Shown: positions 592 to 59,215 of the stretch, in pieces
How the letters are laid out: every line of letters begins with the position of its first letter
How positions within the stretch are numbered: the stretch's first letter is position 1
Assembly (NCBI GenBank): GCA_002269645.1
Contig: NIVC01000031.1
Location: forward strand, 1,302,001 to 1,366,000
Source: Macrostomum lignano
Lineage: Eukaryota
Reading direction: 5' to 3'
Length of the DNA stretch: 64,000 bases
Notes under the pieces: model-generated
What the model was told of the DNA's origin: nothing
Database searches by the model: none
The model's input: the letters and a program-made list of their open reading frames with translations, nothing else
Program-made: the position numbers and the translations under genes

Positions 592-1246
592 GTAAACAGC
601 TAGTGTCTGCTAAAATGGAAATGCTCCAAGAAATACAAAGAGCTAATCAAAGCCCTTCTATTCTTGTAAGTCCATTAGTTTCAACCATTTATTTTTCATT
701 GACAAATATTTCTAAGACTTGTTTTATTATTTATTTGCTTTAACTTTTATTTTAGGGCACAATCAAGACATCCAAGAATATCTATGATTCACAAGACCCA
801 TCTGAAAAACTGAAAATACATATCTGTATTAGATTTACTGGAACTGTTAAAAAAGTTGAATGCTTTCTAATTATTCATCAGTTTGATAAAACTAATTCTG
901 GAATTTCTGAATGCTATCTTGATAGTAAGCTATACCACAATCATGTTGGCATGATTGTCTTTGACTATACTCCAACTGATATGAAATGGTAAGATAATTT
1001 TTGGACTATTTAAACTATGTTGTTCGATTTTTTTCAATTGATTTTTCAATTCAATAGTCACAATTAATTATTTCTTTTTTAATATTTTAGTAATGAAATA
1101 AATGAGAACTTCTTTGTAACTATTGGAGAACGAGATGAGACAAGCTACTTGAAATATCAAGAGTTTATAACCCAGCTTGGCTATCCTGGTAAGTTTATTT
1201 TGTATCATATGCCAGTTAAAACTTTTATTAATAATAGGACCCACTT
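592..1246 (+). CDS. Partial spliced Rel-homology gene, copy A (end of RHD-N plus IPT domain); 5' exons unresolved
   Basis: Exons 592-665, 756-988 and 1091-1188 have AG/GT boundaries, consistent phases (1/0/2/1) and no stops; a possible last exon is 1238-1246. The peptide TSKNIYDSQDPSEKLKI...HNHVGMIVFDYTP resembles NF-kB p50 SDAIYDSKAPNASNLKI...HRQFAIVFKTP. Confidence 0.6.
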
Positions 1247-1440
1247 AATTCTTCCTGACCAGCATATAGCTTTCTGAAGCTGAAGCACCAGTGATAATTA
1301 TTTTTTATGAGCTTAAATTTTTCACAAAAAAGTATAGCTATAGTCCTTAAAAAGAATAAAATACATCCATATTAAAGTAAAATGATAAAAATATTAACTT
1401 TCTCTGCCAGTGACTAGGTTACATCTCTTTGATTCCTGAC

Positions 1441-1650
1441 CCACTCAGAAAAATTGTGTCCTTGAGCAAGACACAGCTCCACATTGCTTCAGTTCTCCTA
1501 GCTGTAAAATGGGTACTAGTTGGGGTAATTGAAGGTATGTGTGGCGACCCCCAGTCCTTGGACTGAACAGCCGTACGCAGCCTTCAGATGCGCCCGCACA
1601 ATAGCTGCGACTGAGCTGTCGGTTGCACATCTGCCTATTGGGGCACAAGT
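1441..1650 (+). mobile_element. 5'-truncated tRNA-derived SINE with CORE-like central domain
   Basis: GTGTCCTTGAGCAAGACAC...CTTCAGTT...CTGTAAAATGGG resembles the CORE-SINE domain; the body matches the copy at 1890-2197 in inverted orientation. Confidence 0.75.
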
Positions 1651-1889
1651 TCTCAGAATTCCATTAAAAAATCTTTCACATGAATCTGTCTGTATAACTT
1701 GTTCTTCATTGATTTTATTGCCTTCTTTGTCTTCTAATTTTCAGATTGCTACTCATCTTAAACATCAATTGGCATAAAAACTTAAATAGACTATCAGAAA
1801 CAGCAAACCCCCTACTGACTCTCGCTGTCAACCCTCTGGTAATCAAGATTTCACGACGAGTGACGGTGCTTTTGCATGCTCGTGGGCCA

Positions 1890-2197
1890 TTATAATAAAT
1901 ATAATAATTGATTACACCTGCCCCAATGGGCAGATGTGCAACCGACAGCTCAGCCGCAGCTATTGCGCGGCGCATCTGAAGGCTGCGTACGGCTGTTCAG
2001 TCAAGGACTGGGGGGTCGCCACACACCCTCAGTTACCCCAGCTATGCTGGCACCCATTTACGGCTTGGGGATGAACTGAAGCAATGCAGAGTTAAGTGTC
2101 TTGCTCAAGGGCACAAATTGTTCCGAGTGGGTTCGGGATTCGAACCCCCGACTTTCAAGTCACGAGTCCGACGCTCTGACCACTAAACTACAACCAC
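1890..2197 (-). mobile_element. Full-length tRNA-derived SINE with CORE-like domain
   Basis: On the minus strand: tRNA-like head with A box TAGTTTAGTGG and B box GGTTCGAATCC, then GTGCCCTTGAGCAAGACACTTAAC core, shared body and an ATT-rich tail. Confidence 0.85.
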
Positions 2198-2624
2198 CTT
2201 ACACTCGACGATTTGTCAGTTAACATATTTAGAATTGCAGTGCACAAAAGCAGGTGTTTCGTAAGTAAGAATGTCAAGTTTCTGTAAGTGGCATGACAGC
2301 AGTCTGCATTTTCTGTTTCACTGCCTCTTTCTTTGCCTGGTTTCTACTCATATAATCAGGCCTACACTGGGCCATGCTTGTCATTCCTGCTCTGGCTGTA
2401 AGATATCAAGGCAAAGACAAGCAAAACAGCACAATCATACACTCATCAATATGTTAAAGTTTTCACACCCAAAACCAGTTGGTCATCTTTTCTTAGATCT
2501 CACCCTCATGTAACACAACTCACACCACGCCCGTGGTTCTCGTCTTAATTAAACCCCAGTGTAGCTCAGTCCAGTGTCTATGGTATGTATAACGCTTTTT
2601 ATTTAATGGCGGGGCCAAGGATAT

Positions 2625-2654
2625 ATTTCACGGCCGGGCCGTGAAATCAGCTAG
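2625..2654 (+). mobile_element. Helitron-type 3' terminus (5' end not located)
   Basis: Perfect inverted repeat ATTTCACGGCC-G-GGCCGTGAAAT (2625-2647) followed by CAG-CTAG|T. Confidence 0.65.
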
Positions 2655-3583
2655 TGCAGAACAGCGCCTGGCTGAGCCACACTTAGGTTCAAGTATAATA
2701 ACCCCCCCCCCAGATTTGCTGTCTATGGCGTAAAGAATGGCTTCGGACTGGGCTTCTAGCATGGATGAAGGAATTACACAGAACAAAAACAAAACTATTT
2801 GTTGAATGGACAAAAGAATAGAATTTTTTATACAGACATCATAACTGCTTTCTTCCTCTGGGCCACGACGGCTTAAGGGAAAGAAATTAGCATTAAAACA
2901 AAAGGTTGTCTGTGTTTAATATACTACAGCATAGTATGTGCGTTAATCGTGACTTTGGAATTTCTCCCGCGTACAAGCTTCAGCCAGTAAGAACTGGGAC
3001 TATTATTAAATTAGAGCAGCCAGTAAAATTCATGGGGGGATATCCCAGTTTTTAGGAAGCCTTGACCATAGACTCTGTTTCAGACGAGCAATCCTTTCTA
3101 TTCCTTCATCCATTGCTTCTAGGCCTCGGCGAACCTCAGCCATTCTGTACGCCAAAGAAGCAAATCTGAGGGGGATGTTATTTTATGCGTAACTGTTAAC
3201 TGTTCAAAGTTTACTTTTTGTAGGGCAGTAATATAGCTTGTAAGAGCTACGAGTAGCTATATCAAGCATATTATCATTGATTGTATTTGTTAACGTATTT
3301 TCCAACCAAGTATTTGTACTTACAATTGGTCTTCACTACTCAACAATCATGCCTTACTATTTTTCTATCCGCAAATACAGGACTGCAAAGTTCAATCAAG
3401 CCAAAGCCAAGTTCAAATCCATACTCCCTACAACTGAAACTGCTGTGTCGTTACCAGCTACACAGCAATGGCAATACTGACAAGTGGCATTGGGCTGAGT
3501 TTTCATCAGAAGCCCTGGTCTGTAAGTGTTTAAAGTAAATCGTAGCTATAAGTGTTACAGGGGTGTTTATCTATAGTTTAATC

Positions 3584-4106
3584 CGCTTCCGGACATTTGC
3601 CCTCCGGCACTTCCCCTCCGGCACTTGCCCTCCGGCACTTCCCCTCGGCGGCGTTTGCCCTCCGGACATTTGCCCTCCGGGACATTTCCCCTCCGGACAT
3701 TTGCCCTCCGGACATTTCCCCTCGGGGACATTTGCTGTTAAAAAGTTGATGAAAACCGTTATATTAATAAATAAAACAATAATACCGTTAAGAAAAACTT
3801 AAAAGTGTCTCAAAAGCTTAAGACTTTAGACTTTTCTCTCGTAATTCTTGTACATTTGTGTACATGTACTTACTTGTTTGAACACACACTGAAGGGAAAT
3901 TTTTTTGTTTCATGATTGTGGAGAAATTTCATTTCCAGAGGGGAAATGTCTTGAGGGCAAACGTCCGGAGGGCAAATGTCCGGAGGGCAAATGTCCCCGA
4001 GGGCAAATGTCCGGAGGGGAAATGCCGGAGGGCAAATGTCCGGAGGGCAAATGCCGGAGGGCAAATGTCCGGAGGGCAAATTCCGGAGGGCAAATGTCCG
4101 GTAGCC
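3584..4106. mobile_element. Mutator/foldback-like MITE with minisatellite-built TIRs
   Basis: Ends CGCTTCCGGACATTTGCCC and GGGCAAATGTCCGGTAGCC; ~150-bp arms made of GGACATTTGCCCTCC repeats; exact 9-bp TSD AGTTTAATC at 3575-3583 and 4107-4115. Confidence 0.9.
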
Positions 4107-4786
4107 AGTTTAATCTCACTGTTTGTCACCAATTCTGTTGTGGGGTCGGAGGTTACTGGGGAATTTCGGAAGTTTCTTGGGGATTTGGGGAAAATACGCA
4201 AATTCTATTACTGAAAGAAGTATGCTTATTGTAACTCCCGGAGCGTGGAAGTGTCCGAGCGGCAAGACACTGTCTATATTAACTTAAACTAATCCAAGGG
4301 AGGGCTACGCGATGGATCGGAGTTGCCTGAGAAACGGGGCGCACTATAGGGGAATCTTAATAGCTAGTAGGGAATGCTGACATGGTGGGGGATGCGCTTA
4401 ATAGGGAATTAGATAAGGGCAGAGCGCCTAATGGTTGCCTAATAGTTGGGAGCTAAATGGTTAGGGAATGCCTAATGGGATAGGGAGACAAAGTAAATGA
4501 TATTAAGGGAAGGGTCTGTAGATAGGCTAAGGCCTGAGCAAACAGTGCGCCTGGATGGGGAGTTGGCAAATCGCCAGGTTAACCAGAGATCTGGGAAAGA
4601 GGGGGGAAGGCAACACGCCTGTCCAACTGATAAAGGGAAGGGGAGGGGTTTAGGATAATTACTAGGGAAGAGACTGTACGTTCTCTTGGGGAGAAGGGGA
4701 AAGGCTGTACGCTTATAGCTAAACAAAACCTTTGGGGGAGAGAGAAGGCCTTCAAAGAAATGACACAGAGTCAGATCTATTTTTAG

Positions 4787-6514
4787 AACAACTGTTCGAT
4801 TAAAACCTTTGCTAGACTAACAGAAAGTGCTAGGCAAGGAGTATACTCTCCTGTCAATTATTTCGCTTATATTTAAATGATTTTCAGCAAAAATGGCGGT
4901 CACATTCAAACAAAATTTCCGCTAGGTAACATACTTACTAGTATTAATGGCACGTGAGTATTTATGGCTAAGAAAATAATATTTTACGCTTATAGATGTC
5001 AAATTTTTTATCAAGAACAAAATTTGTGCGTAAAAGAAAGGCAACGTGAATACAGCTATTAATGATGTGCATGATTATCAGAGTACCTGCCACATAAGGT
5101 GTTTTTTAACTTGAAGTTTTGAGCTACTATTGACAATATGAATCGAATTGTGCCCGATTGTAGACTTGCCGAAGCCTCCAACTGTATCGGATGTTCAACC
5201 ATACGATATTACACTTAAAAATGGGGATATCGTTGAAGTACTGGTACATTTTAGTCGGCCTATAATTACTGGTGAGTGTTCGTTTTGAGCTGTTGAGTAT
5301 AGTAAAATAGCCTGCACTGAATCCCTTTCCCTCTGCCTTAGCCAACATGGAACCAATTTATGACGCCAATTCTATTTTAAGCATAAGCCGGAGCACATGC
5401 TAGTACGCTCGTACCAATTCGGCAGGCATTGAGAACACGTGCGATTTTTATAGCATTCCGTACCTCAGTTCAGTTCTGAAAATGTGCGTTTTTTTACCTA
5501 TTTTATGCCATCACAACTCTGAAAATTCATACTGGAGCACACAGATTGTCGGTGACCAAGTTAATAGTTAAAAAATTGGTAAAATATCTTGCTTGGCTTT
5601 AACCACTTCGTAGACTAGCTCAAGCCCATAGATCTTATATTCCCTAGATAGGCCACTTTGTATTGCGGCAATAGGAAAAGCGCGACCGCTGTTTTTCGTC
5701 ACTTGTGCGAAAAAAGCCGACGGGTTGTTTCCATTTTGAGTTCAGTAGCTTAAAGACATAGACGCTATTTTTTGAGAATTGAATAAAACTTCTCATGAAT
5801 TAAATAAAAAGCTACTCACTTAAACTAATAATGATGAATTCACATGAATTCACTGCAGAAACTACTGACGAAATTGAGTTCAGTAGTTTATTTTCGCGCT
5901 GTCGCGAGATGCATGTGAAATTGCCCCCATGTGACTTTTGGGCCTTTCTACAGTTGACAGAGCGTCTGGCTGGGCATGGACAAGCCCCGTTGCCAAAACT
6001 TTTTTGCAGATATGCAGTATGTCAATGTCATTCACTCATTGGTTTTTAAAAAGAATATGCTCGTAAAAACTTGTTAACGTTTTAGATTACGACAATCTCA
6101 CTGGCGTCACGCTAACCAGCTCGGATAAAGTATCTCTGGTCAATTTCGAACTCAATGGGGTAATTTTTTATTTTAATTTCTAACCCAGAATTAAGTGAAG
6201 GAAATAAAAGACAAATAAATAAAATAAAGTTGTCTTTATCTTTAAATCTATTTTAGCACCGACTTCGCCTAAAACTGACAAAATGCACCGACAACCATCA
6301 GGAATTTACAAACGTCGAACGCTTTTTTGTCACTATCTGTCTCCATGGCAACAGTAATGGAGTCGAATGGAAAGATATCCAGTCGACAATCATTATTCAA
6401 CTGCCAATGGATCCAATTTGGACCAGCGGCAGTTCGTCGGCGATTGTCGCTCCGCCAAGCTTGCGGGACCGGCGCAACAGACCGGTGGCTGATCTGGACG
6501 CCAGCTTCATCTGA
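4787..6514 (+). pseudogene. Rel-homology paralog, copy B, probably decayed
   Basis: Open exons 5859-6016 (phase 1 to 0) and 6257-6514 (phase 0 to stop). The last exon RLRLKLTK...ERFFVTICLHGNSN matches copy C LLKLQLTK...EQFMAKLCLTKESN. The upstream block 4996-5271 (ICA*KKGNVNTAI...IRCFL...ELCPIVDLPKPP, GTGAGT donor at 5272) is RHD-like but has in-frame stops at 5031, 5112 and 5139. The 5' limit is tentative. Confidence 0.5.
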
Positions 6515-6946
6515 TGCTGGCCAACTGTTCGGCCAAGTTTCGTTTCTGGAAAATGTCAGAGAGGCAATGACATCGCCTTTCTGTTTTTTTTTCGGTATAA
6601 TTTGTATCATTTGCTTTCTGCTTGTTTATTAAAATCAAGCCTCATCTTGCTTAATAATTTTTTAACATTATTCAGAAGGGCAATTACACCGCCTTCCTGT
6701 TTAATCTTTTGTTAAAAGTATTGTAATCTCGGTGTTACTTTCTTATCTGTAAAAAAATAAAATATTGTTTGATATGAAAAAATATACATCCAGGCTGAAT
6801 CCAATTTTGATGTACATATGAAAAAAATAGAATAGAAAGAATTTCTTTGTATATATTTAATTTATAGTAACATTAATTTGATGATGCTATTAATACAGAT
6901 GTGATCGTAGGGGATACATGTAGACTAACAGGTCAACAGAGGCAGG

Positions 6947-9900
6947 CTAATCCTGTCTAGGCCTTTTCGCTCGATTGTGCAAAGAAGGTGTTTTTAGCTG
7001 ATTCAGGTAGATAAACCGTACATCCACGCTGGAAGTTAATCTTCCAGAAGAATTGCTCTCTTTGGTCAAGCAGAGCTTTGCCATGAACTGCTCCTCGGGG
7101 AGATTCGCTATGGTGTCTTGGACTTCCAATTTGGTTAGTTGCAACTTCAAAAGATTCTACAATAATGCGAGGAAGTTTAAACTGAAATCTGTCAAAATAG
7201 GCTACATACGCAAGATGGGGGTGATTCCTATGGGATTAGATACATATATAGAGGCGATCATGGATTAGATTACTGGTGGCCTTACACGCTGTACTTCCAC
7301 TGGAATAGATACTTCCACAGACAATGGATTAGCTGTTGCAGCGCTGGTGCATGGTACCAGTAGTTGAGCAGATATCGTCTCCGATTTCTTTTCTGAAATA
7401 AGTAGAATATAAATATGAATTATATAGTACTTTCAATAAATTTAAGCGAAATAAGCCTTTTTTATCAGTTAACTAACTAATATCAGCTTCGAGCTGCACC
7501 CAGATGTCTGACGTCATCGGATATTGCAAGTCGCGCTTAAGATAGACGCAAACTGGATTGAATGCTTTGACACCAAACGATTTGCCACCGTCACTGCCTG
7601 ATTGGCCTGTGGGTTGTAAATGTATCATTTGTCATGCCATTGGTTTGGTGACAATCACTGACCATCTGAATAATTCCCTACAGAATCGCTGAGCATCTGA
7701 ATAATTGCCCCCACAGAATCGCTGACCATCTGAATAATTCCCTACAGAATCGCTGACCATCTGAATAATTCCCTACAGAATCGCTGACCATCTGAATAAT
7801 TCCCCTACAGAACCGGTGACCATCTGAATAATTCCCCTCTATACAATCGCTGACTATCTGAATAATTCTCCTGTGGAATCGCTGACCATCTGAATAATTC
7901 CTATGCAGAATCACTGATCATTTGAATAATTCCCCTTTACAGAATCGCTGACCATCTGAATAATTCCCCTCTATACAATCGCTGACCATCTGAATAATTC
8001 TCCTGTGGAATCGCTGAACATCTGAATAATTCCCCTACAGAACCGGTGACCATCTGAATAATTCCCCTCTATACAATCGCTGACCATCTGAATAATTCTC
8101 CTGTGGAATCGCTGACCATCTAAATAATTCCCATCTACAGAATCACTGACCATCTGAATAATTCTCCTCTGCAGAATCGCTGATCATCTGAATAATTCCC
8201 CTCTACAGAATCGCTGACTATCTGAATAATTCCCCTCTACACAATCGCTGACCATCTGAATAATTCCCCTCTATACAATCGCTAACCATCTGAATAATTC
8301 CCCTCTACACAATCGCTGACCATCTGAATAATTCTCCTCTGCAGAATCACTGATCATTTGAATAATTCCCCTTTACAGAATGGCTGACCATCTGAATAAT
8401 TCTCCTGTGGAATCACTGACCATCTGAATAATTCCTATGCAGAATCACTGACCATCTGAATAATTCCCCTCTACACAATCGCTGACCATCTGAATAATTC
8501 TCCTCTGCAGAATCACTGATCATTTGAATAATTCCCCTTTACAGAATGGCTGACCATCTGAATAATTCTCCTGTGGAATCACTGACCATCTGAATAATTC
8601 CTATGCAGAATCACTGACCATCTGAATAATTCCCCTCTACAGAATGGCTGACCATCTGAATAATTGTTAACTAGAGAATTCATGTGACAAGTAAAGTTAG
8701 TTCAAAACTCACACAAAATTGGTTCGGAAATGGCATAGGAGTTCAGAACCATTTGAATATCATCCGGAACGAAGGCGAACAGAAGTCGCACGCTTTGCTG
8801 GACTTCTTTAAGAGGATCAACGGACAATGGACCGGAACTTTCGTCATTCGGGTTGTCTATGGATAAAAGGTACATTTAAAAGTACATTTGCAGTATCTGT
8901 GTAATAGTAATTGCTATGGTATAGCTTATACAAAAAGTAAGCAAAACTTACGAAACATTCTGCGCAGATTACGTGAGTTACACTGAGAATCTTCAGATGA
9001 ATTAAACAGTTCGTTAAGCATTTTAGCCTTTTGATCGACACTTTTTAGAACGTCACAGTTTTTACACTTTACAATCCCGATTTTATTGAATCTGAAATGT
9101 TAAAACCATGCGTTATAATGTTATAAATGTATACTGTTAATAAATTTTACATTTTACAAATGGAATGACCGTTAAACAGTTGATGAGACGAAGAAATAGA
9201 CAAAGGATTTTGACAAAATGTACAGATAGATTAGAGACAGACAGACGTGATACGATAAAGACAGACACTCAAATAGACAGACAGACACAAGCAGATGGAC
9301 AACAAAACAGACAGGTAAGGCAAGCAGACGGACAGACAAAGACAAGTAAGCAAGCAGACGGACAGACAAAGACAGGTAGGCAAGCAGACGGACAGACAAA
9401 GACAGGTAAGCAAGCAGACGGGCAGACAAAGACAGGCAAGCAAGCAGACGGACAGACAAAGACAGGCAGGCAAGCAGACGGACAGACAAAGACAGGTAAG
9501 CAAGCAGACGGACAGACAAAGACAGGTAAGCAAGCAGACGGACAGACAAAGACAGGTAAGCAAGCAGACGGACAGACAAAGACAGGTAAGCAAGCAGACG
9601 GACAGACAAAGACAGGCAGGCAAGCAGACGGACAGACAAAGACAGGCAGGCAAGCAGACGGACAGACAAAGACAGGTAGGCAAGCAGACGGACAGACAAA
9701 GACAGGTAGGCAAGCAGACGGACAGACAAAGACAGGCAGGCAAGCAGACGGACAGACAAAGACAGGCAGGCAAGCAGACGGACAGACAGACATTAAGATG
9801 AACGCACAGACAAGGCCATATCGTGACTTACAAAACAGGGATGCTAGTTTCACTTTTTGGCAGCTTGATTTTCTGTCGATAGACACCTGCTGTTGGGCAG

Positions 9901-10762
9901 CAGTAGTCGCCCTTCAAATTCCAAGGATGCACTTTTAATGGCGGCTCGCCAAAGATAGTGCCATTGGTATCAACCAGCAGCACAATCAGCTCTCCATAAA
10001 CATCGAATTCGCGCTGATATCCATCAGTCAATTCCAATGCAATCTTAATAAATTCACCTTGACCATTGTCGTTCCGACCTTTCAGCAAACTTCCAACTGC
10101 CTTGGAGCTGCCTCGTCTAATAAAGTCATTAATCTCGCCATCAGATCGATGGCGATAGGATGATACAGGTTGGTTACTGACTGTGATTTTCACCTTTGGC
10201 CATGGTTGCTGCTGCTGTTCGGCCTATAAAGTGGATAATGAAATAAAGAGCTATTAGTAAGACTGCAATTGTCTGACTAATTTAAAACTGATGTTGATAT
10301 AAAAATTATTAAGGACTTAAATTCGAAAAAAATTCCTCATCTTGTCAAACTAATTTTAGAATAAAAATGAGTATAAAATGAGTACATTTTTAAAGAGATT
10401 TTTTTTTACTTTCAAGAATATTAGCAATACAAATAAACAATACATAAATTTATAATTGATCTGCAACTGTTGCATTTAGCTTCATTATTTATTATCAAGT
10501 AAAGCAGAATACACAATGAAAATATATTAAAATAAGAATTACCCCATACTCAGGCTGGTTTTGTAGAAAATCTCCAGTGCTATTAACACCTTGGTCAGTC
10601 TAAAAAAGTTTTACAAGTAAAAAAATTAAGACAATAAATTTAATTAAATGTTGTTAAAATCAACAACAATCAAGATCTTACGAAGCTTTCAATAAACCTA
10701 TTTGGGTCAGCTATCAACTTATCCACTTCTGATCTATTGCTATAATTGTTTTGTGCCATCAT
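6947..10762 (-). CDS. Complete Rel-homology (NF-kB/Rel/NFAT-family) transcription factor gene, copy C, 419 aa: RHD-N + IPT + terminal NLS
   Basis: Eight exons: 10762-10682, 10599-10543, 10223-9832, 9091-8952, 8856-8713, 7606-7478, 7392-7286, 7156-6947. All introns are GT-AG with matching phases, giving 1260 nt with no internal stop. Collinear RHD motifs: NQPVSSYRHRSDGE (RelA EQPKQRGMRFRYKCEG), VHPWNLKGDYC (PHPHELVGKDC), FNKIGIVKCK (FQNLGIQCVKK), SVRLLF...AISEPIL (AVRLCF...VLSHPIF), VRFIYL...KRPR (MEFQYL...KRKR). Confidence 0.87.
7653..8665. repeat. Intronic minisatellite, ~30-33-bp unit (CTGACCATCTGAATAATTCCCCTACAGAATCG), ~31 copies
   Basis: Visible tandem repeat inside intron 5 of the Rel-like gene. 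Confidence 0.97.
9290..9790. repeat. GACA-derived 30-bp minisatellite (CAAGCAGACGGACAGACAAAGACAGGTAGG)
   Basis: About 16 tandem units in intron 3 of the Rel-like gene; explains the ORFs at 9165-9938. Confidence 0.97.
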
Positions 10763-12481: not shown

Positions 12482-13059
12482 TGGCAATAGTGCAGTTTCA
12501 TTCGCAAAATTATTTTTTGTTTAAATTTGAAAGTTTGAAACCAGAAAACAATAACAACAATGTTTTAAACCATTCTAGCAACTGTGCCAGAGCTCACTGG
12601 TCACGGAACTTTAAAGCAAATGGGTGCTCTATTAATATTAATATACTTTTTTCATTAAATCTTGCCATGCTCAAATGCTACTTGAAAGTTGAAATGCAAT
12701 TTGTCTATGGAAAAAAAAGTTTAAAAAATTGAAAGGGGCTCAAGTGGGGGGGGGGGCTTGAACTGTTTCCCTTTAGCTGAGAAGCTGCTAATATCTGCTT
12801 TTTCTTTTGGACAACATATTGTATTATGGCTGGACAACCACCAAGACCCTTGTGGATAATTCCGCCGAATGAAGTGCTGCTAGCGAATGCTCTACCGCAA
12901 CTAGAGCTAAATGTGCGCAACCTGATGGCTGCCATGGTCTCTGCCACAATCGTTAGAATAATTTAAAACATCAATTTTTATTGTTGTTATTGTTTTCTGG
13001 TTTTGAACTTTCAAATTTAAATGAAAAATAATTTCGCAAACGAAACTGCACTATTGCCA
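12482..13059. mobile_element. MITE-like element with ~110-bp TIRs
   Basis: TGGCAATAGTGCAGTTTC...AACAATAACAACAAT at 12482 is mirrored by ATTGTTGTTATTGTT...GAAACTGCACTATTGCCA ending at 13059; TSD unclear. Confidence 0.75.
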
Positions 13060-13552
13060 ATACCACCTATGCTTATATCTATTTTCTTTTTGATCTAAGT
13101 TGAAAAAAGGTATTAAATAAGTTTTAAAATAGACCAACTTTTAGCTATTATATATGTTTACTTCAAATAAAGTAAATGATTTTGAATTTGATATAATTCT
13201 TTATCAATTTATTCTTTGTATAAATGACTATATATAATGTCTGAATTTTATAACTTAATTAGAAGAGATACTATAAAAAAATATATGATGCTTGTCTATA
13301 TTTATAAAATATAAGGACTATAAGCAAACAATTGTTATATATACCTATATGGCTATATCTATATACTCAACCTTCTTATTTATATAGGGGCTTATACCTT
13401 TGCCTTTTTCAACATATAAAACTAAACTATATTTAAGCCAAGACTAAAATCCTAAGGTTCTTTATGTAAACAAGATTTGTTTCCCAATCTAAAGAAATGA
13501 AAAGTTCATTTGAATGAAAGAAAGCCAATGACTTCTATTAGGCCACTTAATG

Positions 13553-14433
13553 GGTGACTGGTCATTTCATCAAAAACCTTTTCATCAAAAGCCTTTTCGT
13601 CAAATAGTCATTTGGTCAGTTCGTCAAAGTGTGTGTATAGTTTCAAATGTAAATTGAAGTTACTCTAGATTAGTCACATGTATACTCAATAGGTCAGCAT
13701 TAAAAAGAAGTATACTGTTTGTTTAAAATACTGTTTCTAAGAAAAGGCACAAATCATAGTAGCTAGGGCCTTTTCATATTGCTTGTTCTGGTTCCAGAAC
13801 CAGAACCAATTTGTGAAATATAACTTTTTGTCTCTATAACTAGAAGGAGATACGTGCTAAAAAGTTTTTATTATTGAATGACAATCGCCAAGAAGAAAGT
13901 GAAAAATTCTGCTGAGGTTGTTAAGGCAGTCAAACATTCAACAGAATTAAATAGTTATACTGCTGTTTTTTTGGAAGATCCAAACCGATTCTGATTCTGG
14001 AATCGGTAATATGAAAAGCCTCCTAGTTAGATTACTCATAATTGCATAGTAAAATATCAAAACCATGCAATTATACCGTTATTGGTATTAATATTAATGA
14101 AATAACATAATAAAAGCATAATTTCACTAAGTAAAATACTATGTCCATCACAAAGCTAAGAATCAAGATGTAAAAGGAAAATTATAAGTTAGGGTTAGGG
14201 TTATCCTTTTTCATGTTTCATTCTTAGAAACCCTTTGCTTAAACAAAAGGTAGTGAAGTCCTTTTGATATTGATTTATCTTGACATTAAATTATTTATTT
14301 TAAAAACTAATTAAATTATCTAAAAATTAATTACAATGGGCTTTATTTTATCTACCATTTGACGAAATGACAAATTTACTGTTTGACAAAAAAACTTTTG
14401 ACAAAATGGTATTTGACAAAATGACCTAGAACC
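13553..14433. mobile_element. Mutator-like MITE with a nested smaller MITE (13766-14023)
   Basis: Ends GGTGACTGGTCATTTCATCAAA and TTTGACAAAATGACCTAGAACC; direct repeat ACTTAATG (8-10 bp) on both flanks. The inner element has GGGCCTTTTCATATT / AATATGAAAAGCCTCC ends flanked by TA. Confidence 0.75.
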
Positions 14434-16757
14434 ACTTAATGCCTTCTACTTGTTAGGCCTAGTGCCTATAGTTTTAAAACATAGGCCTATCTTAACCTTA
14501 GTCTAGTCTAGGCTTAGATTAGACCAATACTCAACTAGTAAGGTTTAGTAGGCCCCTAATCCCTATAAAAGAATGGAAAATATCTTAACCTTAAATATTG
14601 TAGATGTTAATATAATTTAATAAATTTATTCATTATTTCTAAAGACATCCAAAGAGTTTAAAAAATAGCCCCAGCCTAATTAAAATAGGCCTAAAGCCTA
14701 GTTTATAATTAGACTTAGGTAGGTTTTATAGTAATTAGGCCTAACCTAGTCTTAGAGTTAACTCTAGAGACACTTTACAAATATAAGAGATTATGATGAA
14801 TTAGGCCTACAAAAAAACTTCAATAAAGGCATATTCTAATTTCTAAATATAACATACTATGGAGATACACATTAAAATATTATTTTAACATAGTCTTATG
14901 TAATATTCTATTCTTATGTGCCTGTTTTTATAATAGTATACGAGCTCGTAATAGTTTGTATATTTCTAAATTATGTTTTACACGCGCTATCAAATTAGTA
15001 AACTAGTAGCCGCGTTGAATTTGCCCGAAAAATTTGTGAGGTGGGGTAGAGAAAAAAAACTAAAATTGGAAACTGGTTAAACTTGAGGTTTTCGATTGGG
15101 GTTTCTTCGAAACCGGTTGACGTTGCGTTCGCACGAATAAAGCCGGAAATTATCGCGCAGACGAATCACAACGGAATTTTTTCCCCTGTTTTACTCCAAC
15201 TGCCGGGGTCCTCAAGTCCGGGGGAGGGTAGTCGTAATCGTAGCGGAGCTCGGTTGTGTAGCGGCGCGGTCGTTCAAATGATAAGACACCGTAGATTCAG
15301 ACACCGAAATTGAGCTTGTCGATTTTGCTGAGCTTGTTCCTTCCAGTAGGGTAGAGCTGCCACCACCGTAATTTACGTATTACGGAACGAATAAGTCTCT
15401 GAGCTTTCTTTGAGCTGAGAACTTTAATTGGTTGTTTTACGCCCCACGGGCAAATAACTCAAGATAGGCTATGGCTTAAAGTCAACGGATAAATATGGTG
15501 GTTATGTTTAAATTGATTTATTAATATCTTTATTAATATAACGGAGAGCAGGTTAAATTGATGTTATTACTCGGTTACGTCGAGTTAATTCTGCGGGCCG
15601 CGGTGCTAACGGCTAATTAAATAAATAAACTGGATAGGCGCACAAGTAAATCGGATGACAAACTAGAAACAGAAAACTAAGAAAAGGACGAGGAGGCGGA
15701 GAAGGATGCTATAGTTTACACCGAAACGAACATCAATATATAATTGCCTCAAACTCTACCTCGGCTGGACCACAAAAAGGAAAAATAAAACACGCACAGG
15801 GACCAGCCGCGGTAGGAAAAGCAAAAGTATTGAATTAAGTGGGTTACGAAGTATAATAAGCAACTGCTGGAAACAATTATACGCAAAAGGGAGATTAGCA
15901 GTCCCATTACGGGACGGGGAGCGTGACGGAAAACGTCCCGGCGTGGGAGAACAATTCCGGGTTGGGACAACACGATCACGTAAAGGTAAACCGATTTAAA
16001 GTTTTTTAAAATAATGATTAATGTAAAATTTAATAGACCAAATTAATAAAAGGGGCAGCCACCTGCCACATTAGAAACAATTTTAAGTTTGTTTTACTAA
16101 GCAAAATGTTGCGATAATTATTTTTTAGTTATAAACGCACCTCCCCAGTACCCTATCTATATATAAGCCGATTTCACTGCAAATAAATCAGTTCAGATCA
16201 GTGCAGCCAGGGTGAAATACAGATACTGAGAATAACTAGTATTCTATAGTTATTCTAGTATCTTTGGGTGAACAGCCCACCCCAAAATAAATTTCTGGCT
16301 GCGCCACGGACCTGCCATTTAGGTATTGCAGTATCCATTAAATAATTTGGTAATATCCTAGGTTTCGGATTAAAGTCTAAGCTAGCCTAATCCGAATCCT
16401 AAAACCTGGAATTCTATAATAATCTTATGATTTTTAGAAATAAAATGTCAAGATTTTAGCACAGGCTTAGGCTCTACTAGCTAGTTCAAATTTCACAATT
16501 TTAATACTAAAGCTAATATTTGGTGCACGCGGTCATTCGTATTCGGGCAGACGAAACGACTTTTTTTAAAATAAAAAGTAACAATATAGCTACATAACTT
16601 GTTGGATACTTTTCATAATGAGATATTGCGAGTCATGCAAAGAGTCATTTTTGATCATGAGATATCATTTTTGTATGCGTAATTTTGTTAATCGCAATAT
16701 TTCAAAACAACAACTAACAACAGAATATGTACGGTCGCCTTCAGCGTCAAAGGGTGC

Positions 16758-17313
16758 CAGGGGCATCGCCATCGGGGAGGACAGTGGGGCATGTGATGCC
16801 CCCCCCCCCAGTAGAAGCCATGGGGGACATGCCAACGTACGCTAGCGCTTTGTTGAAGTGTAGCTCGTCTAACATATAGTAGGAAAATAAACGTCAACAA
16901 AAACATAAAATAAAATTTTCTTTCTAGCCAACGCGTTTCGTCAAACACAAGACGCGTCGTCAGGGCAAATTCAATTAACCTTAGTTCACAACACCAATAT
17001 ATTTAAGCAAAACAAACTGTACAGTCCAAAGGCTGTATAAATTCCAAATAATTTGCTTCAAGGCAACAAACACATCACGCCTGCAGCACCAAACTAAGTG
17101 CCTACAGCGGTGAAATGTTTCCTGCAGCACCAAAATGAGTGCCGGCGATGCTAAAATGGTGCCTGGGAAGTTAAAATGAGTGCCTGCATGCGGCGCCAAA
17201 ATGATCGATGACAACACCGATTTGGAAATACAGGAATTTAGTCATGTAAATTTATTCATGTAAAATTCTCGGCTTTGTCCCCCCCACCAGAAAAATCCAT
17301 GGCGACGCCCCTG
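16758..17313. mobile_element. hAT-like MITE
   Basis: TIRs CAGGGGCATCGCCAT / ATGGCGACGCCCCTG (14 of 15 match); degenerate 8-bp TSD AAGGGTGC / CAGGGCGC. Confidence 0.7.
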
Positions 17314-17324
17314 CAGGGCGCGCC

Positions 17325-19380
17325 TCAGGGCCAGGTCACGAAAGAACGCCACGCCGCCGGCCGAATCCAAGGCGCCGGCGTCAGACAGCAGGCAATCGAC
17401 GAAACGCCGAGTGCGCGCCTGCCCTTGCCGGTAGGGTGCCTGCGCGGCGCGGGAATGATGTGGCCTGCTAGCTGAAGTCGCCGACGAATGTCGCTTGGAC
17501 GGATCAGGCCGGCGGGGTGATACAAAGCCGCCGCGTTAGTCACTTGCTCGTAGCCGATCTTGATGGCGGCGCGCAGCAGGCCAGCATGCACGACATCAAC
17601 TGGTTGCTCAAGCGAATCCGTCAGCGTCCAGGTCTCGGCGTTGTACAGCAGGACGGTCTCGATCATCGCCTGGAACAACGCCACACTCTGGCGGTCAGGT
17701 AAGGCCTCGGACTTTTGGAGCACCTTCAGAACGAAAGGCAGCCCAGGCAAGCCCGCGGCAACGCCGCGAATCCTCGCGAACGCCGGGAACCAGACCGCCG
17801 AGGTAGACCAACTGCTGACAACGCAGGAGCTCTTTCGCCTGTCCATCAGCACCTCGGCACAAAATCGCAGCCTCCATGTTGTCCGGGACACAGAGCACAA
17901 CGGTCTTCTGCGTGTTGACCACCAGGCCGACACTCGCCAAACTAGCAAACTAGCAAACTAGCTTGTCCAGTTGTCCAGGGTGCCCTCGACAGTTGAGGAC
18001 AGCAGGGCGAGATCGTCAGCGTAGCCAAGCACGCTGAGCCGCCTCTCCGGTTGACGTCGACCCACGCGTCGCCGCAACAGAAAGCCGTCGTCGTTGGTAG
18101 GAATGTACCAGGCCACGCGGCCTCTGGCATTGGGCCTAGCGGCAGAGACGGCCCGAATGGCGTCATCAACAGCAGCCTGCTGGCGCTGCAGATAGACAGC
18201 CGCTAAGGCCTCCTCTGCCACGAGGGTTGGTCGCCTGCTCAAACGGAGCCTCTCCAGCTCTTCCCTCGCATTCCGAATCGCGGGGTCATCTTGCCATACT
18301 GGCTGCCCCCGCGCTGGGCCGGTCGCATCAGCGGGACTGCTTGCTCCGGGGCGGCTCGAACTGCAGCGCACACCTCTGCGTACTCGGCACCTCCACGCTT
18401 GCCGCCGAGCGCAGTGATGAAAGCGCTGGCAAAGCGGCTGTGCGTGTTGGCGTCAGCGGTGGCCGCTTCGGCGGACGTAGAACGGTTCGCGAAGACGAAG
18501 GTCGCAGACGATCAGAAGTCGATGATCGGACCGCAGAGTAAGCGGCGTGATGGCGCGGCCATTGACGACGCGGCGGCGCTCGCGGAAGCGCGCCAGCACA
18601 TGATCGCTGAGCCTGCCTCCGTGTTGCGTTCCGGCCACACGCGTTCCGCCACCTGCGCTTGCAGCCCACAAAAGTTGCGAGTCTGCCCAGCGGCTTGCGG
18701 AAGCGAGTGTTGGCCGACACCATGTCCTGCCTCTCTAGGAAGTCCTCCAGCGCTCCAGTGCCGTTCTCACGCGGTGTGACGAACAGTGACCGCTCGGACC
18801 TACACAAAACCGCGTTCAGGTCTCCAAGGATGATCACTGTGACACGCTGTGCCGTAGTTGCCTCGACCCGTACCGAGATCGAGCTGCTCAAAAAAGTCTT
18901 AAGCCTCATCAGGGCGGGTGGCAGGGGGCGCATACGCGCAGAACAGGCGAGCGTTCTAGCCTCGAAGCCGAACGTCGACCCGAAGCAGCCGAGGGGACAG
19001 GGAGACGCAGTGACAGCTCTGCTGCAGCCTTGGTCCGACCAGCGCTCCAACTCCTCCACGGCCTCGTTGGTCCGCCGATGTGTAGTAGAGGGTCCATCCG
19101 GCGCCCAGCTCCTCACAGTAAAGCTCTGGGTCAGCCTTGATACACACCTTCTGCAGTGCGATGACATCACAGCTCAGGTCGAGCGCTAGCTTTGCCAGAG
19201 CCCCTCCACCGCCAGGCGGCCTTGAGCGTGCGGCAGTTCAGCGTCTCGAGCCGAAGCGTGGTACGGCCCTGTGGTACGGCTGGGGCTCGATGTAGATGAG
19301 CCTCTCGGTCCCTGGCGCCACCCAGAAGATCCGCGTATGGGCCAGCGCGGCAGCAGCTCGGCGGGGCATCCCCACGTCAC
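17325..19380 (-). mobile_element. Degenerate RTE-clade non-LTR retrotransposon (endonuclease plus RT C-terminus; RT core deleted, frameshifted)
   Basis: AP-endonuclease motifs DVIALQ, GRGGVGALV, IILGDLNA, VSANTRF, SDHRLL; RT motifs GYADDLALLS and YLGG; RTE-type tail LLYNAETWTLT...[10 protein letters not shown]; spread over several frames. Confidence 0.9.
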
Positions 19381-19845
19381 CAGTTGGAAAAAATTATTCA
19401 ATCAAATAAAACGAAAAATGACAGTTGATTAGAGAAACGATGCATAATTAGATAACCACAAAGAGAATTCGTCAGCTAAGGCATCAAAATTGTTAAATTT
19501 AACCATACAAACTGACAATAGTCGTATAATTTACTACTTCTTTCATGTACTTTTGACAAGGAACACTGTATATAGCTATTTTTGTGTCGTAGCAGGCGTG
19601 GCGCACGAAGAGATCCAGTTTTATTACTTCTAGTACTTTTAGTCTGTCTCAATTGCCTCAGTTTATAATAATCTCCGACTTTTTACTGGCGCAAACATCG
19701 CTCTGTCCGCATGTTGCTAAATTTAGCTTATTCTGTATCAAAACAGTATGATGTGTCAGCAAGGCACCAAACTCAATAATTATACAGACAGCATTATGTG
19801 GCACCAAGAGTTGCTCCGTTCCCTCACAGCCCATCGCTCTCGCAG

Positions 19846-22616
19846 TCACGATGAGGCACTCAGGAAGCTGTGCTGCAGCAGCTCCGCGGTGTCCGCTCGC
19901 TTCATCGGGTCATAGTCTACGCACCTGAGGTAGAAGTCCTTCAGGTCGGCTGAGAACCCGTCCGCAATCCGAGGCATCGCCCGCCCTTCGCACCTCAGGA
20001 TAATGATGCGGTGCTGCGGCTCTTTGCCATCAGGAGGCTGCATGGTCGTCAGCTCATACACGGTGCAGCCGAAGGCCCACACGTCGGTTTTGGCTGAGTA
20101 CGGAATCGAGTCGTCCTCGCCCATGAACAGCTCGGGCGCCATGAAGTTCCAGGAGCCTTTTGGCTGGTTGCCTGCGCTCAGGCTGCAGGTGTTGAAGATC
20201 TCCCTGGCCAGACCGAAGTCGATCAGCTTGATGACGCCCTCGTTGGTGAGCATCACATTGGAGCTCTTGATGTCACGGTGCAAGATGGCGCCCTCCGGCT
20301 GGCAGTGCAGGAAGTTCAGGCCTGAGCAGATCTGCAGGTGGAGCAGTTTTGAGCAGTCATAAAATTGGATCTTTCCAATTTTTATCCCACCCACACTGAC
20401 CTGATCTCATACTGATCCGACACTCATCCCACCCATGCCAGGCAAACCCAGAGAATCCAGAGACGCACCTGTCTGGAGAAGTCTCTGACCCCGGACTCCT
20501 TGAACGGCTTGTTCTGACGCTGCATCAGCTCAAAGAGGCTGTGACCCGAGACCAGCTCGGTGAAGATGTACATCCCATCCGAACTCTGCTCGCACTTGAG
20601 GAACTGCACAATGTTGGGATGCGAGAGTTGCTTGAGGATCTCAACTCCACGATTCTCCATCTGAAGTTTTTTCTTCAGTTCCTCTGCGTCTTGTTCAGCT
20701 TGGCTCAGGGGCAGCACCTTGACAGCCACCGTCTGGTTGCGGTCTGTGAGGGCCTTGTACACCTCACCGAATCCGCCATGGCCGATGAGCTGCTTCTTGT
20801 TGCCCTGCAGGATGAAGTCCCAGTCGGTGAAGCTGGGGTCCAGCTGCTTCTTGGGGCTGAAACATGAGGTGAAGGAATTTGATAAATTTTGAGCTGCTTT
20901 GGGCTTCCTAAGTACTATGGAGTCACTCAGCCTTCTGCATCACCCCTCTGCGTCACCGCCCTTCTGCGTCACCACCCCTCTGCGTCACCACCATTTTGCG
21001 TCACCACCATTTTGCGTCACCACCATTTTGCGTCACACCCCTCTGCGTCACCACCATTTTGCGTCACCACCCTTCTGCGTCATCACCCTTCTGCGTCATC
21101 ACCCTTCTGCGTCATCACCCTTCTGCGTCATCACCCTTCTGCGTCATCACCCTTCTGCGTCATCGCACTTCTGCGTCTGCCTGCCTAAGAGAGCAGCTGA
21201 GCTGACTGTCCTAAAATACATGTACATGCACAAAAGCCCTGATGGAAAAGCCATTTCCAATACGAAACCTGTCTTCCCAAATCAACACCTGTAGCTCTGA
21301 CCCCAAAATACACATTAAGATTGGGAGCGCCATGGGGAGCTACCCTGACAAATTCATGATGCCCCTCGCTTGACGGCGGCGCTGCTAAGAATTTCAGGAA
21401 AGTGCCGATCAGGAAAGCGCAATGAATTTTCGCCAAACATATATCAGTATTTTTAGTGTCAGGCAGCAGTTCTCATCCATGACTCACTCAGCTGAGGCGG
21501 CAGTCGGCGCTGAGCTGCCAGCGGGAGGCCGAGAGGCTTCGAGCCGCCGCTGAGTGGAGGAAATCCAGGCCTGCTTTGCTCTTTGGTCTTTGTAGGACCT
21601 CTCTACAGCATCAGCCGGTGTTTCGCCCTCTTTGTTCTTCAAGCTGAACATTTCGGCTCCGATTTGGTCAAAAATGAACTGAAGCGAGTCGACTGGCTGA
21701 GATGCAGCGGCCAAATGGACGGCCGTGTGACCGTATTTGTCAGGAACTGTGAGACAGTCGCTGCCGGCCTCATTCACCAGCCACTTCAGATTTGAATTGT
21801 CAAAATTCACAGCAGCAAAGTGAAATGCTGTTTTATCACTCTTTGTCTTCAGCCGAAAGCCGTCAGTTCCGATCTGTCTCTTGATCCACTCCAGCGACTC
21901 GATACCCTGATGCTTAGCGGTCAAATGGACAGCCGTGTAACCGTTTTCGTCAGGAACTGTGAGACAGTCGCTGCCGAGCTCCTTCACCAGCCACTTCAGA
22001 TTTGAATTGTCAGACTTCTCAGCAGCAATGTGAAATGCTGTTCTATTCCACCGTCCCTTCAGCCGAAAGCAGTCAGTTCCGATCTGTCTCTTGATCCACT
22101 CCAGCGACTCGATGCCCTGATGCTGAGCGGCAAAATGGATGGCCATGTCACTTGATCTGTCAGGAGCTGTAAGACAGTCGCTACCGAGCACCTTCACCAG
22201 CCACTTAAGACAAGAATTGCTTTTTCTGTTCATAGCGGCAAAGTGAGCGACTGTGTATCTCTTTATATCGACAATTCTCAAGCAGTCTCTGGCTCCCTTC
22301 TCTTTAATCAGCTTCATCCAAGATTCGTCCTGATGCTGGGCTGCCAAGTGCACTGGAGTCTCATCACTTTCATTTCTATGTGTCAGACAGCCGGTTCCGA
22401 ATCTGTCAATCAGCAGCTTCAGGCACGACAATCTCACCGGCTTGCAGGCCACGTGATGGACCAGCGGCATTTTGCGAAGTTCTTCAAATTAAAGGGAAAG
22501 TCTTGCGTGTCGAACCCGCCCACCTCCAGCTCGATGTTGCTGTCGATCTCACCGCACAGTCGCTGCAGCTCCTCGCTGTCTCCAGCCTCCAGCGCCGCTC
22601 TCAGCTTCCGCTCCAT
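19846..22616 (-). CDS. Ankyrin-repeat / STE-like (MAP3K-type) Ser/Thr kinase fusion gene
   Basis: The ankyrin exon (22481-21488, ~9 repeats such as ETPVHLAAQ, YTAVHLTAK, HTAVHLAAA) ends at a phase-2 GTGAGT donor and splices in frame to kinase exons 20856-20469 (GHGGFGEVY, VAVK) and 20331-19846 (HRDIKSSN, DFG, APE, DVWAFGC). Probable ATG at 22616; the join to the ankyrin exon needs a 71-nt intron or a frameshift. Confidence 0.88.
20930..21180. repeat. 16-bp minisatellite (CGTCATCACCCTTCTG) in the ankyrin-kinase intron
   Basis: Visible tandem repeat; explains the ORFs at 20889-21294. Confidence 0.95.

Positions 22617-50852: not shown

Positions 50853-59215
<8,363 letters not shown>

Follow-up and report, generated by a model that had tools for sequence, protein, structure and literature searches.

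An intact, divergent Rel-homology-like gene of Macrostomum lignano and its most likely coincidental ankyrin-kinase neighbor

Class II Rel proteins (RelA, c-Rel, RelB, and Dorsal) share an ordered set of Rel-homology (RHD) motifs and end their conserved part with a basic nuclear localization signal (NLS), without an ankyrin tail. Class I NF-kB members (p105/p100/Relish) carry a C-terminal ankyrin inhibitory tail in the same polypeptide, and p50-like RHD-only products (processed NF-kB1/NF-kB2) are obtained by processing of such an ankyrin-tailed precursor. IkB proteins feature six to seven IkB-specific ankyrin repeats and an N-terminal DSGxxS degron. Kinase domains and ankyrin repeats are also combined in one polypeptide in RIPK4/ANKK1 and ILK/TNNI3K; in RIPK4/ANKK1, an N-terminal RIP-type kinase is followed by the repeats, and RIPK4 feeds into NF-kB. 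In IKK/TBK1, the kinase is followed by ubiquitin-like and scaffold/dimerization domains.

In flatworms, canonical NF-kB, p50/p105, and c-Rel were reported to be lost or not found (PMC4484250, PMC11432056), TLRs are missing (PMC8609888), and so are RIPK and NIK (PMC4894443). A preliminary description of the locus studied here had cited NF-kB as reported missing from several flatworm genomes, which agrees with the first two reports and has to be qualified by seven highly divergent RHD genes found in Schmidtea in 2026 (PMC13563047). The Schmidtea gene tested in that work was the closest Relish/Class-I NF-kB homologue; its knockdown was lethal and had no effect on the transgene-silencing response assayed (PMC13563047).

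Within the window, i.e., the whole stretch of 64,000 nucleotides from the free-living flatworm M. lignano analyzed here, one intact, very divergent Rel-homology-like gene, designated rel1, was identified on the minus strand (6947..10762). It comprises eight exons (10682-10762, 10543-10599, 9832-10223, 8952-9091, 8713-8856, 7478-7606, 7286-7392, and 6947-7156) and encodes 419 aa. The model was spliced by hand, with GT-AG at each junction and consistent phases, and is corroborated by the public M. lignano protein BOX15_Mlig027372g2 (P0001), which is 93% identical to rel1 (BLASTP), has essentially the same exon structure, and is named “RHD domain-containing protein” in UniRef. No literature match was found for the locus tag Mlig027372. 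Large minisatellites are carried by the rel1 introns.

The last nine codons of rel1 (NRAKRPRQD; 6950..6976, minus strand) are directly followed by the stop codon (6947-6949). The basic cluster KRPR lies nine residues after FIYLNQ and two residues before the stop, a spacing resembling that of p65 (FQYLPD...KRKR). KRPR is thus NLS-like and may function as an NLS. Its position after the last conserved strand corresponds to that in class II Rel proteins, as does the absence of an ankyrin tail: no Ank match was obtained for the 419-aa protein (Pfam), so that the C-terminal inhibitory tail of class I NF-kB is not found in this polypeptide. The preliminary description, according to which the intact copy stops right after its NLS with no ankyrin tail, was borne out in this respect. 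In contrast to class II Rel proteins, rel1 possesses no trans-activation region, since the protein ends at the NLS-like cluster. An RHD followed by an NLS with no activation domain is likewise the layout of p50-like products; however, the rel1 gene itself ends after the NLS, and its motifs look more Rel-like than p50-like.

Among the 24,736 Pfam families searched, RHD_DNA_bind (PF00554) was the top match of rel1 (19.5 bits, E=1e-3), and likewise of P0001, with 25.6 bits (E=1.4e-5, already corrected for library size), both scores being below the gathering score of 27. The match covered positions 60-136 of the 169 profile positions. When the PDB was searched with a profile of the rel1 family, only two sequences matched, both of them RelB. 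Comparison of the rel1 N-domain with the canonical RHD-N using hhalign yielded P=0.002, versus 0.11-0.61 for the cross-controls, at a probability for the RHD match of 5-14%. Furthermore, MAFFT alignment with RelA, c-Rel, and Dorsal independently aligned the recognition loop and the GS, HPxxLxGxxC, FxNxGI, and VRLxF motifs, and the order of the motifs in rel1 is colinear with that in canonical Rel proteins (x[FY]R[YH][KR][CS][ED]G, GS, HPxxLxGxxC, FxNxGIxxxK, and VRLxF in RelA, c-Rel, RelB, and Dorsal).

The codons for SYRHRSDG (10137..10160, minus strand) were aligned by MAFFT with the Rel recognition loop RFRYKCEG. In p65 numbering, R35 and G40 are retained and R33 is lost, the substitutions F>Y, Y>H, K>R, C>S, and E>D being conservative; compared to class II Rel proteins, R33, Y36, and C38 are changed, and ~20 residues are inserted behind the loop. 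The codons for HPWNLKG (9909..9929, minus strand) were aligned with the Rel motif HPHxLVG by hhalign, by the PDB profile alignment to RelB, and by MAFFT. Exon 4 (8952..9091, minus strand), encoding FNKIGIVKCKNCDV, was aligned with the Rel motif FxNLGIxCVKKxD by the RHD HMM, hhalign, and the PDB profile, and it ranked first among all 2216 six-frame segments of the window searched with the canonical RHD HMM, with a value that is weak alone (E=0.37). Taken together, residues ~47-290 of rel1 bear a weak but specific similarity to the N-terminal RHD DNA-binding subdomain and the start of the dimerization subdomain.

The dimerization subdomain, which class II Rel proteins possess, is undetectable in rel1. 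No Pfam match to RHD_dimer (PF16179) or IPT was obtained at E<=10 for rel1 or P0001, residues 269-419 compared with the canonical dimerization domain gave P=0.35 (hhalign), and only scattered residues (C, G, C, KxD, W, AD, P) were aligned in this region by MAFFT. AlphaFold2 reached a pLDDT of 30 from the single sequence, which is unusable, and of 42 from a hybrid alignment with RelA, c-Rel, and Dorsal, with values <50 in region 269-419. The top Foldseek matches of the hybrid-alignment model were RelA and p65 (TM 0.19-0.28); this result was discounted as circular, because RelA was part of the AlphaFold2 input alignment, and both TM-score and confidence were low. The identity to class II Rel proteins is ~20%. 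Neither the 131-aa ORF of exon 3 alone (Pfam) nor the spliced protein searched against the PDB by phmmer produced a match. A Pfam scan of the three minus-strand frames of 560-10480 (stops written as X) returned no match, Ank included; as even the true rel1 exons were missed, this negative was given little weight, and the spliced model was built instead.

An exhaustive phmmer search of 1.84 billion representatives revealed no relative of the rel1 family outside M. lignano, and no orthologues are known elsewhere, unlike the situation for class II Rel proteins. The homologue search with the canonical RHD profile recovered Rel proteins of vertebrates and Drosophila alone, none of the sequences being from a flatworm, and planarian proteins were recovered by neither of the rel1/P0001 family searches. 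The Schmidtea mediterranea RHD genes, which likewise belong to a flatworm, are long-branched, and resemble immune NF-kB little (PMC13563047), are therefore likened to rel1 by description.

We consider rel1 to represent, with a probability of roughly 60%, one intact, lineage-restricted, fast-evolving RHD-like gene of the Rel/NF-kB class, with the ankyrin-repeat kinase gene 9.1 kb upstream being an unrelated neighbor. Its product would be nuclear and would bind DNA through an altered recognition loop, with SYRHRSDG where canonical Rel proteins have RFRYKCEG. Lacking an activation domain, it would behave like an RHD-only factor, working as a repressor or alongside a partner protein. The resemblance to RHD could instead be due to chance, rel1 then being an orphan gene of unrelated fold, as all RHD scores are sub-threshold, the hhalign probability is low, no confident fold was obtained by AlphaFold2, and the C-terminal 150 residues are similar to nothing. 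However, Pfam, the PDB profile, and hhalign converge on one family and one stretch of the protein, the motifs being in colinear order, and the library-corrected Pfam value of P0001 as well as its UniRef name point in the same direction, so that a chance origin is judged improbable.

A true RHD descendant that is no longer under selection, i.e., a young duplicate of no consequence drifting to pseudogenization, is an unlikely explanation as well, if one to be taken more seriously. Between rel1 and P0001, 17 non-synonymous and 3 synonymous differences were counted, corresponding to a dN/dS of 1.59. Neutrality was not rejected at this value (p=0.59), whereas omega=0.2 was (p=9e-5); with 20 substitutions, the test has little power. 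Since the ratio is compatible with neutrality, function of rel1 is not assured. The missing homologues outside M. lignano, the exons skipped in the public fragment models P0002 and P0003, and the minisatellites within the introns also fit decay. Against this, both copies retain canonical splice sites and an open frame of eight exons (419-432 codons), and their exonic length differences amount to only 45 nt in exon 2 and 3 nt in exon 3, both in frame. Moreover, the amino-acid changes between rel1 and P0001 cluster beside the recognition loop, which fits diversifying selection, too.

The preliminary description had listed three Rel-homology sequences within 11 kb, of which the intact one, rel1, withstood the analysis. 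The two others match at the level of shuffled queries. Candidate copy B (ORF 6272..6625, minus strand) was matched by tblastn only at E=3.9, and its match to the RHD HMM fell in the wrong region (E=54). Candidate copy C consists of fragments at 5571-5799, 5130-5357, and 2631-2915 (span 2631..5799, minus strand) with tblastn E values of 0.13-4.8 each. The best colinear tblastn chain between 480-6946 and the rel1 protein reached 75 bits, compared to 77 +/- 18 for shuffled queries (n=150), 75 of which (75/150) attained this score. No segment of the candidate copies ranked first in the RHD HMM scan of the 2216 window segments. In the paralogous locus encoding P0001 (L001), indels of 8, 1, 1, 6, 2, and 7 nt as well as deletions of ~100-140 nt disrupt the frames of the candidates, the 8-nt indel interrupting that of copy B. 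The Rel-like motifs noticed by eye (QPVGFFRTSDEK, FNDIPIFKC, and VLFLFCVIPSS...SEAILYAIDSK) were rejected on the basis of the shuffle test, the HMM scan, and the broken frames. Both candidates are no better than chance and would be chance ORFs or, at most, unrecognizable relics.

The ankyrin-repeat and Ser/Thr kinase gene (19846..22616, minus strand; hereafter Ank-kinase) encodes 643 aa in four exons (22553-22616, 21488-22481, 20469-20856, and 19846-20331), all joined at GT-AG sites, with the ATG at 22616, precisely the end coordinate given in the preliminary description. Pfam matches to Pkinase (E=2.7e-58) and Ank_2 (E=7.7e-23) are strong, which completes a divided outcome of the HMM check proposed for the spliced proteins: kinase and ankyrin domains were found, RHD_DNA_bind was the top family but sub-threshold, and RHD_dimer/IPT was absent. 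Ankyrin repeats (~25-320) precede the kinase domain (373-639), which retains intact VAVK, HRDIKSSN, DFG, and APE catalytic motifs. This order is the reverse of that in RIPK4/ANKK1, RIPK4 being a distant match (E=1.3e-25, 27% identity), and unlike IKK/TBK1, the protein ends a few residues past the kinase domain. The closest solved kinases were SLK, STK24/25, MST4, and MAP3K5 (ASK1), at ~5e-35, and neither IKK nor TBK1 was among the best 60 matching solved kinases. Judged by these matches, the kinase domain is closest to the STE20/MST/ASK1 type and not to IKK, TBK1, or RIPK; an STE-group affinity (SLK, MST3/4, ASK1) and a species-level expansion likewise distinguish the gene from RIPK4/ANKK1 and ILK/TNNI3K. 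The ankyrin region best matched NOMPC (6e-29), followed by ankyrin-1/2 and TRPA1, and matched IkB-beta at only 3.3e-7 over ~80 residues. These repeats thus appear generic and not specifically related to IkB, and reading of the 643-aa sequence by eye revealed no DSGxxS-type degron; the IkB arrangement was therefore not found in the Ank-kinase.

Rel1 and the Ank-kinase gene lie 9.1 kb apart on the minus strand, the latter upstream, as had been described. From this linkage, a lineage-specific, NF-kB-like signaling module had been proposed, in which the repeats of the Ank-kinase would keep the RHD protein cytoplasmic in an IkB-like manner until the fused kinase releases it. Both genes are intact, the NLS-like end of rel1 lies exposed in a protein that carries no inhibitor tail itself, and a rewired pathway is conceivable in animals lacking TLRs (PMC8609888), RIPK, and NIK (PMC4894443). 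In addition, an Ank-kinase paralogue (P0031, 45% identical) is located on the contig of P0001, at a distance of 65 kb from it, making a loose regional association of Rel and Ank-kinase genes possible. However, the Ank-kinase family is large, scattered, and recently expanded in M. lignano, with at least 41 paralogue clusters on ~19 contigs, and no Rel-like sequence was found within 10 kb of six Ank-kinase gene copies at four paralogous loci. At one of them (L005), the Ank-kinase is accompanied by bestrophin and M1 peptidase genes, with no Rel gene. Similarity among the paralogues ends where the gene does (window 19768-23219), and so does the duplicated unit. A GC-rich (58% GC), degenerate, non-LTR-retrotransposon-like block (17325..19170, minus strand) separates rel1 from the Ank-kinase; it was identified by eye from the motifs GYADDLALL (RT) and GDLNA (endonuclease-like), Pfam finding nothing in it. 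Upstream of P0001, no Ank-kinase was found in the readable 10 kb, the synteny test being limited there by an LTR retroelement that occupies the first 4.1 kb of the locus. Because Ank-kinase genes are abundant and scattered, an outcome that the preliminary description had itself named as refuting, and given that the kinase is not IKK-, TBK1-, or RIPK-like and the repeats lack IkB character and a degron, the module is unsupported and must be regarded as highly improbable; the juxtaposition of the two genes is most likely coincidental.

The module, on which the excitement of the preliminary description rested, is unsupported. The locus is left with a new addition to the divergent flatworm RHD proteins, set beside them by description and auto-annotated before. 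Its practical value is modest, as the RHD annotation exists already, the homology is borderline, and evolution of the gene looks unconstrained. Nevertheless, rel1 provides a defined target for knockdown and functional assays in M. lignano, a transgenic and RNAi-tractable model. A bolder reading, to which we assign a slim chance, is that rel1 and its near-identical paralogues represent the only surviving, highly derived Rel/NF-kB-class factor of macrostomids, an RHD-plus-NLS protein with neither inhibitor tail nor activation domain, with the excess of amino-acid changes adjacent to the loop reflecting diversifying (pathogen or stress) selection and not decay; bolder still, a member of the Ank-kinase family might serve as cytoplasmic retention and release partner of rel1. 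If the reading as sole surviving macrostomid Rel factor were true, rel1 would offer an entry to a rewired immune transcription pathway in a genetically tractable flatworm without TLRs and canonical NF-kB.

The locus contains one real, intact and very divergent Rel-class RHD-like gene, rel1 (6947-10762, minus strand), which has already been auto-annotated, and one real Ank-kinase gene (19846-22616, minus strand). The window as a whole is eukaryotic in content, featuring introns, minisatellites, one large satellite and relics of retroelements. The exon chain of rel1, assembled by reading splice sites and phases in the sequence, consists of 10682-10762, 10543-10599, 9832-10223, 8952-9091, 8713-8856, 7478-7606, 7286-7392, and 6947-7156; the splice sites are canonical, the phases agree from exon to exon, and the encoded product is 419 aa long, with the C-terminal end ...FIYLNQLKTPSLHNRAKRPRQD*. 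The top match of the spliced protein was its M. lignano paralogue P0001 (BOX15_Mlig027372g2, 432 aa; 93% identity, 100% coverage), assigning the window to the free-living flatworm Macrostomum lignano; UniRef lists P0001 as an 'RHD domain-containing protein'. Both genes share essentially the same exon structure, exon 2 differing by 45 nt and exon 3 by 3 nt, in-frame in each case, and the rel1 gene model was thus independently validated. The 45-nt indel in exon 2 reads PE[HLSSLDCSYDCANPE]YG (window 6947-10762 versus 10001-16251 of L001, the locus of P0001). The introns of rel1 harbor two minisatellites (7651-8665 and 9275-9788, made up of 34-nt and 30-nt units) that give rise to long spurious ORFs in every frame, and related arrays of the CAGACAGACGG type were found again at approximately 51.1 kb and 57 kb.

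To assess the Rel homology, the spliced proteins were compared with Pfam, as the preliminary description had suggested, and the expectation was borne out in part. Pkinase and Ank were recognized strongly, and RHD_DNA_bind was the top family for rel1 (E=1e-3, 19.5 bits; residues 139-216 against profile positions 60-136) and also matched P0001 (E=1.4e-5, 25.6 bits), both scoring below the gathering score of 27. The dimerisation subdomain (RHD_dimer/IPT) gave no Pfam signal in rel1 or P0001 and a profile-profile value of P=0.35. Pfam scans of the minus-strand frames across 560-10480, and of the largest rel1 exon alone, matched no family. Searching 177,635 PDB sequences with the rel1-family profile yielded two matches at E<=10, both being RelB and both covering the region of the Pfam match. 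Profile-profile comparison of the rel1 family with RelA, p50, Dorsal, and c-Rel resulted in P=0.008 over 136 columns, and in P=0.002 for the N-terminal subdomains only, cross-domain controls ranging between 0.11 and 0.61. The RelA query used here agreed with the p65 database entry along its entire length (100% identity). Unguided MAFFT alignment of rel1 with canonical Rel paired SYRHRSDG with RFRYKCEG, VGS with AGS, PPLKVHPWNLKG..C with PPHRPHPHELVGKDC, FNKIGIVKCK with FQNLGIQCVKK, VRLLFAF with VRLCFQV, and CQ.GSDGGKSFG...C with CRVNRNSGSCLGG...C; we take these motifs to resemble Rel more than NFAT. AlphaFold2 reached a pLDDT of 30 from the single sequence and of 42 with a hybrid alignment including canonical Rel proteins. 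The top Foldseek matches of the hybrid-alignment model were RelA and p65 (E=3e-5 and 1e-4, TM 0.19-0.28), but these carry little weight, since RelA was part of the input alignment and the result is circular. True RHD ancestry of rel1 is considered probable (roughly 0.85). An exhaustive phmmer search with P0001 against 1.84 billion representatives recovered two M. lignano fragments and nothing else, indicating that the rel1 family is without detectable relatives elsewhere.

L001 lies on contig NIVC01000504.1 and aligns colinearly with window positions 1-15,460 at 91-98% nucleotide identity; it is therefore a paralogue, homeologue, or allele of the window locus and not that sequence itself. Most length differences between the two are due to minisatellites. 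Between window rel1 and the gene of P0001, exons differ by 1.7% and alignable intron positions by 2.7%. Of the coding differences, 17 alter the amino acid and 3 are synonymous; the resulting dN/dS of 1.59 fits neutrality (p=0.59) but is incompatible with omega=0.2 (p=9e-5). Several changes cluster directly after the recognition loop, where rel1 reads DFIRRGSS, P0001 NFNSQGST, and the public fragment model P0003 NFISQGST. This pattern fits relaxed constraint or diversifying selection, which are indistinguishable with these data. The reading frames are open in both copies, and all length differences in exons are in-frame. Most likely, the rel1 product would act as a nuclear, DNA-binding, RHD-only factor whose specificity is altered. 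Whether it is functional is uncertain, given the apparent relaxation of selection.

Three Rel-homology genes had been proposed for this region, of which only rel1 withstood analysis. By eye, several minus-strand ORFs at 2.6-6.6 kb look like parts of rel1; their individual tblastn E-values ranged from 0.13 to 7. The top colinear tblastn chain reached 75 bits, as compared to 77 +/- 18 bits for shuffled queries, half of which (75/150) attained 75 bits. When the canonical RHD HMM was applied to the 2216 stop-free segments of the window, rel1 exon 4 ranked first, candidate B (6272-6625) reached no better than E=54, with its match falling in a wrong region of the profile, and candidate C (5571-5799, 5130-5357, and 2631-2915) had no segment among the matches listed. 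In L001, the frames of both candidates are broken by indels of 8, 1, 1, 6, 2, and 7 nt plus deletions of approximately 100-140 nt, and mismatches are spread evenly across codon positions. In view of these four adverse tests (tblastn, shuffling, HMM, and L001 frames), three Rel genes were not confirmed; the two extra copies do not stand up and are, at most, relics beyond recognition. The public annotation of L001 places a 320-aa product without a Pfam domain (16699-22821, approximately window 610-6510) across this same region on the plus strand, opposite rel1, and a single-exon 91-aa product (16669-16944) on the rel1 strand. On the plus strand, an RHD signal was absent, the top segment (756-989) reaching E=3 with the canonical RHD HMM. 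A short repeated element is present in inverted copies at 1420-2200, and AAELSVAHLPIGA appears when either strand of it is translated. This element, probably a dispersed transposable-element fragment, was found in L001 and L002 as well.

The ankyrin-kinase fusion gene was confirmed by a four-exon model (22553-22616, 21488-22481, 20469-20856, and 19846-20331), all junctions being GT-AG and the ATG falling exactly on the end coordinate first assigned to the locus (22616). Its 643-aa product features Pkinase (E=2.7e-58) and Ank_2 (E=7.7e-23) domains and the catalytic motifs VAVK, HRDIKSSN, DFG, and APE. Among the best 60 matches, the kinase domain is closest to STE-group SLK, STK24/25, MST4, and MAP3K5 (approximately 5e-35), and IKK, TBK1, and RIPK are not its closest relatives. 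For the ankyrin repeats, NOMPC, ankyrin, and TRPA1 scored far above IkB-beta (6e-29 versus 3e-7). Within the gene, a 210-nt unit (70 aa, two ankyrin repeats) is repeated 2.4 times at 86% identity (21706-22210), and the intron between ankyrin and kinase exons carries a 16-nt microsatellite in 16 copies (20922-21177). Directly upstream, a strongly A-skewed 8.4-kb satellite array (23829-32189) comprises approximately 370 copies of a 23/45-nt unit (AGAAGCGTCATGTAAA[A/C]AATCAT) at 92% identity.

An intact Rel-like gene does lie near the kinase gene, as described: both share a strand, and 9.1 kb separate the kinase stop from the start of rel1 downstream. The proposal that both form an NF-kB-like module is not supported by the distribution of the Ank-kinase family, which comprises at least 41 M. 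lignano clusters (P0004-P0044) on approximately 19 contigs, often in tandem and mostly with ankyrin and kinase domains together; the next matches beyond these are unrelated kinases with <=32% identity. As far as these searches reach, Ank-kinase genes are abundant and randomly placed, the outcome that the preliminary description had named as counting against the module. In the 10-kb flanks of four paralogous loci (L003-L006), none of the six gene copies had a Rel-like sequence nearby (lowest tblastn E 0.15), and nucleotide similarity among paralogues is confined to window 19768-23219, indicating that the duplicated unit is the Ank-kinase gene alone. A wider grouping is seen at L005, where an Ank-kinase accompanies bestrophin and M1 aminopeptidase, families also flanking the window copy at 36.8-47.3 kb (M1 aminopeptidase with Pfam Peptidase_M1_N, Peptidase_M1, and ERAP1_C, 36831-39214; bestrophin, 43220-47336; both minus strand, as is an astacin metalloprotease at 50853-51536). 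An old segmental duplication may lie behind this; order and orientation of the three genes at L005 differ from the window, and no Rel gene was found there. Conversely, no Ank-kinase lies within 10 kb upstream of the paralogous Rel gene at L001, with two reservations. First, a 45%-identical family member resides 65 kb downstream on the same contig. Second, synteny between L001 and the window stops at approximately 15.4 kb of the window, at an LTR-retrotransposon fragment (L001 1-4136) with minus-strand gag-like, protease-like, and RT (YLDDIIIYS) ORFs, and is untraceable beyond because the distal 4.1 kb of this upstream flank are retroelement. Between rel1 and the Ank-kinase gene, a block of 58% GC (17325-19400) has long ORFs that overlap one another on either strand and contains the motifs GYADDLALL (RT) and GDLNA (endonuclease-like); no Pfam family was recognized in it, and, judging from its sequence, a non-LTR retrotransposon in degenerate form is the probable identity. 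With scattered clusters, no Rel neighbors in the paralogues sampled, and a kinase and repeats of types other than those of the NF-kB pathway, the Ank-kinase gene is most likely an incidental neighbor of rel1 from an expanded family.

The statement that NF-kB was reported as not found in several flatworm genomes is broadly right: parasitic helminths were stated to have lost it (PMC4484250), and a survey from 2024 did not find p50/p105 in Platyhelminthes and gave c-Rel for Chordata, Mollusca, Annelida, and Arthropoda only (PMC11432056). Furthermore, the M. lignano genome was reported to be without TLRs (PMC8609888) and flatworms to be without RIPK and NIK (PMC4894443). No mention of rel1 or the gene of P0001 was found in the literature. 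For Schmidtea, a 2026 study described seven RHD genes with high divergence from NF-kB; knocking down the one closest to Relish proved lethal and left the immune read-out used unaffected (PMC13563047). Divergent flatworm RHD genes are therefore no longer news.
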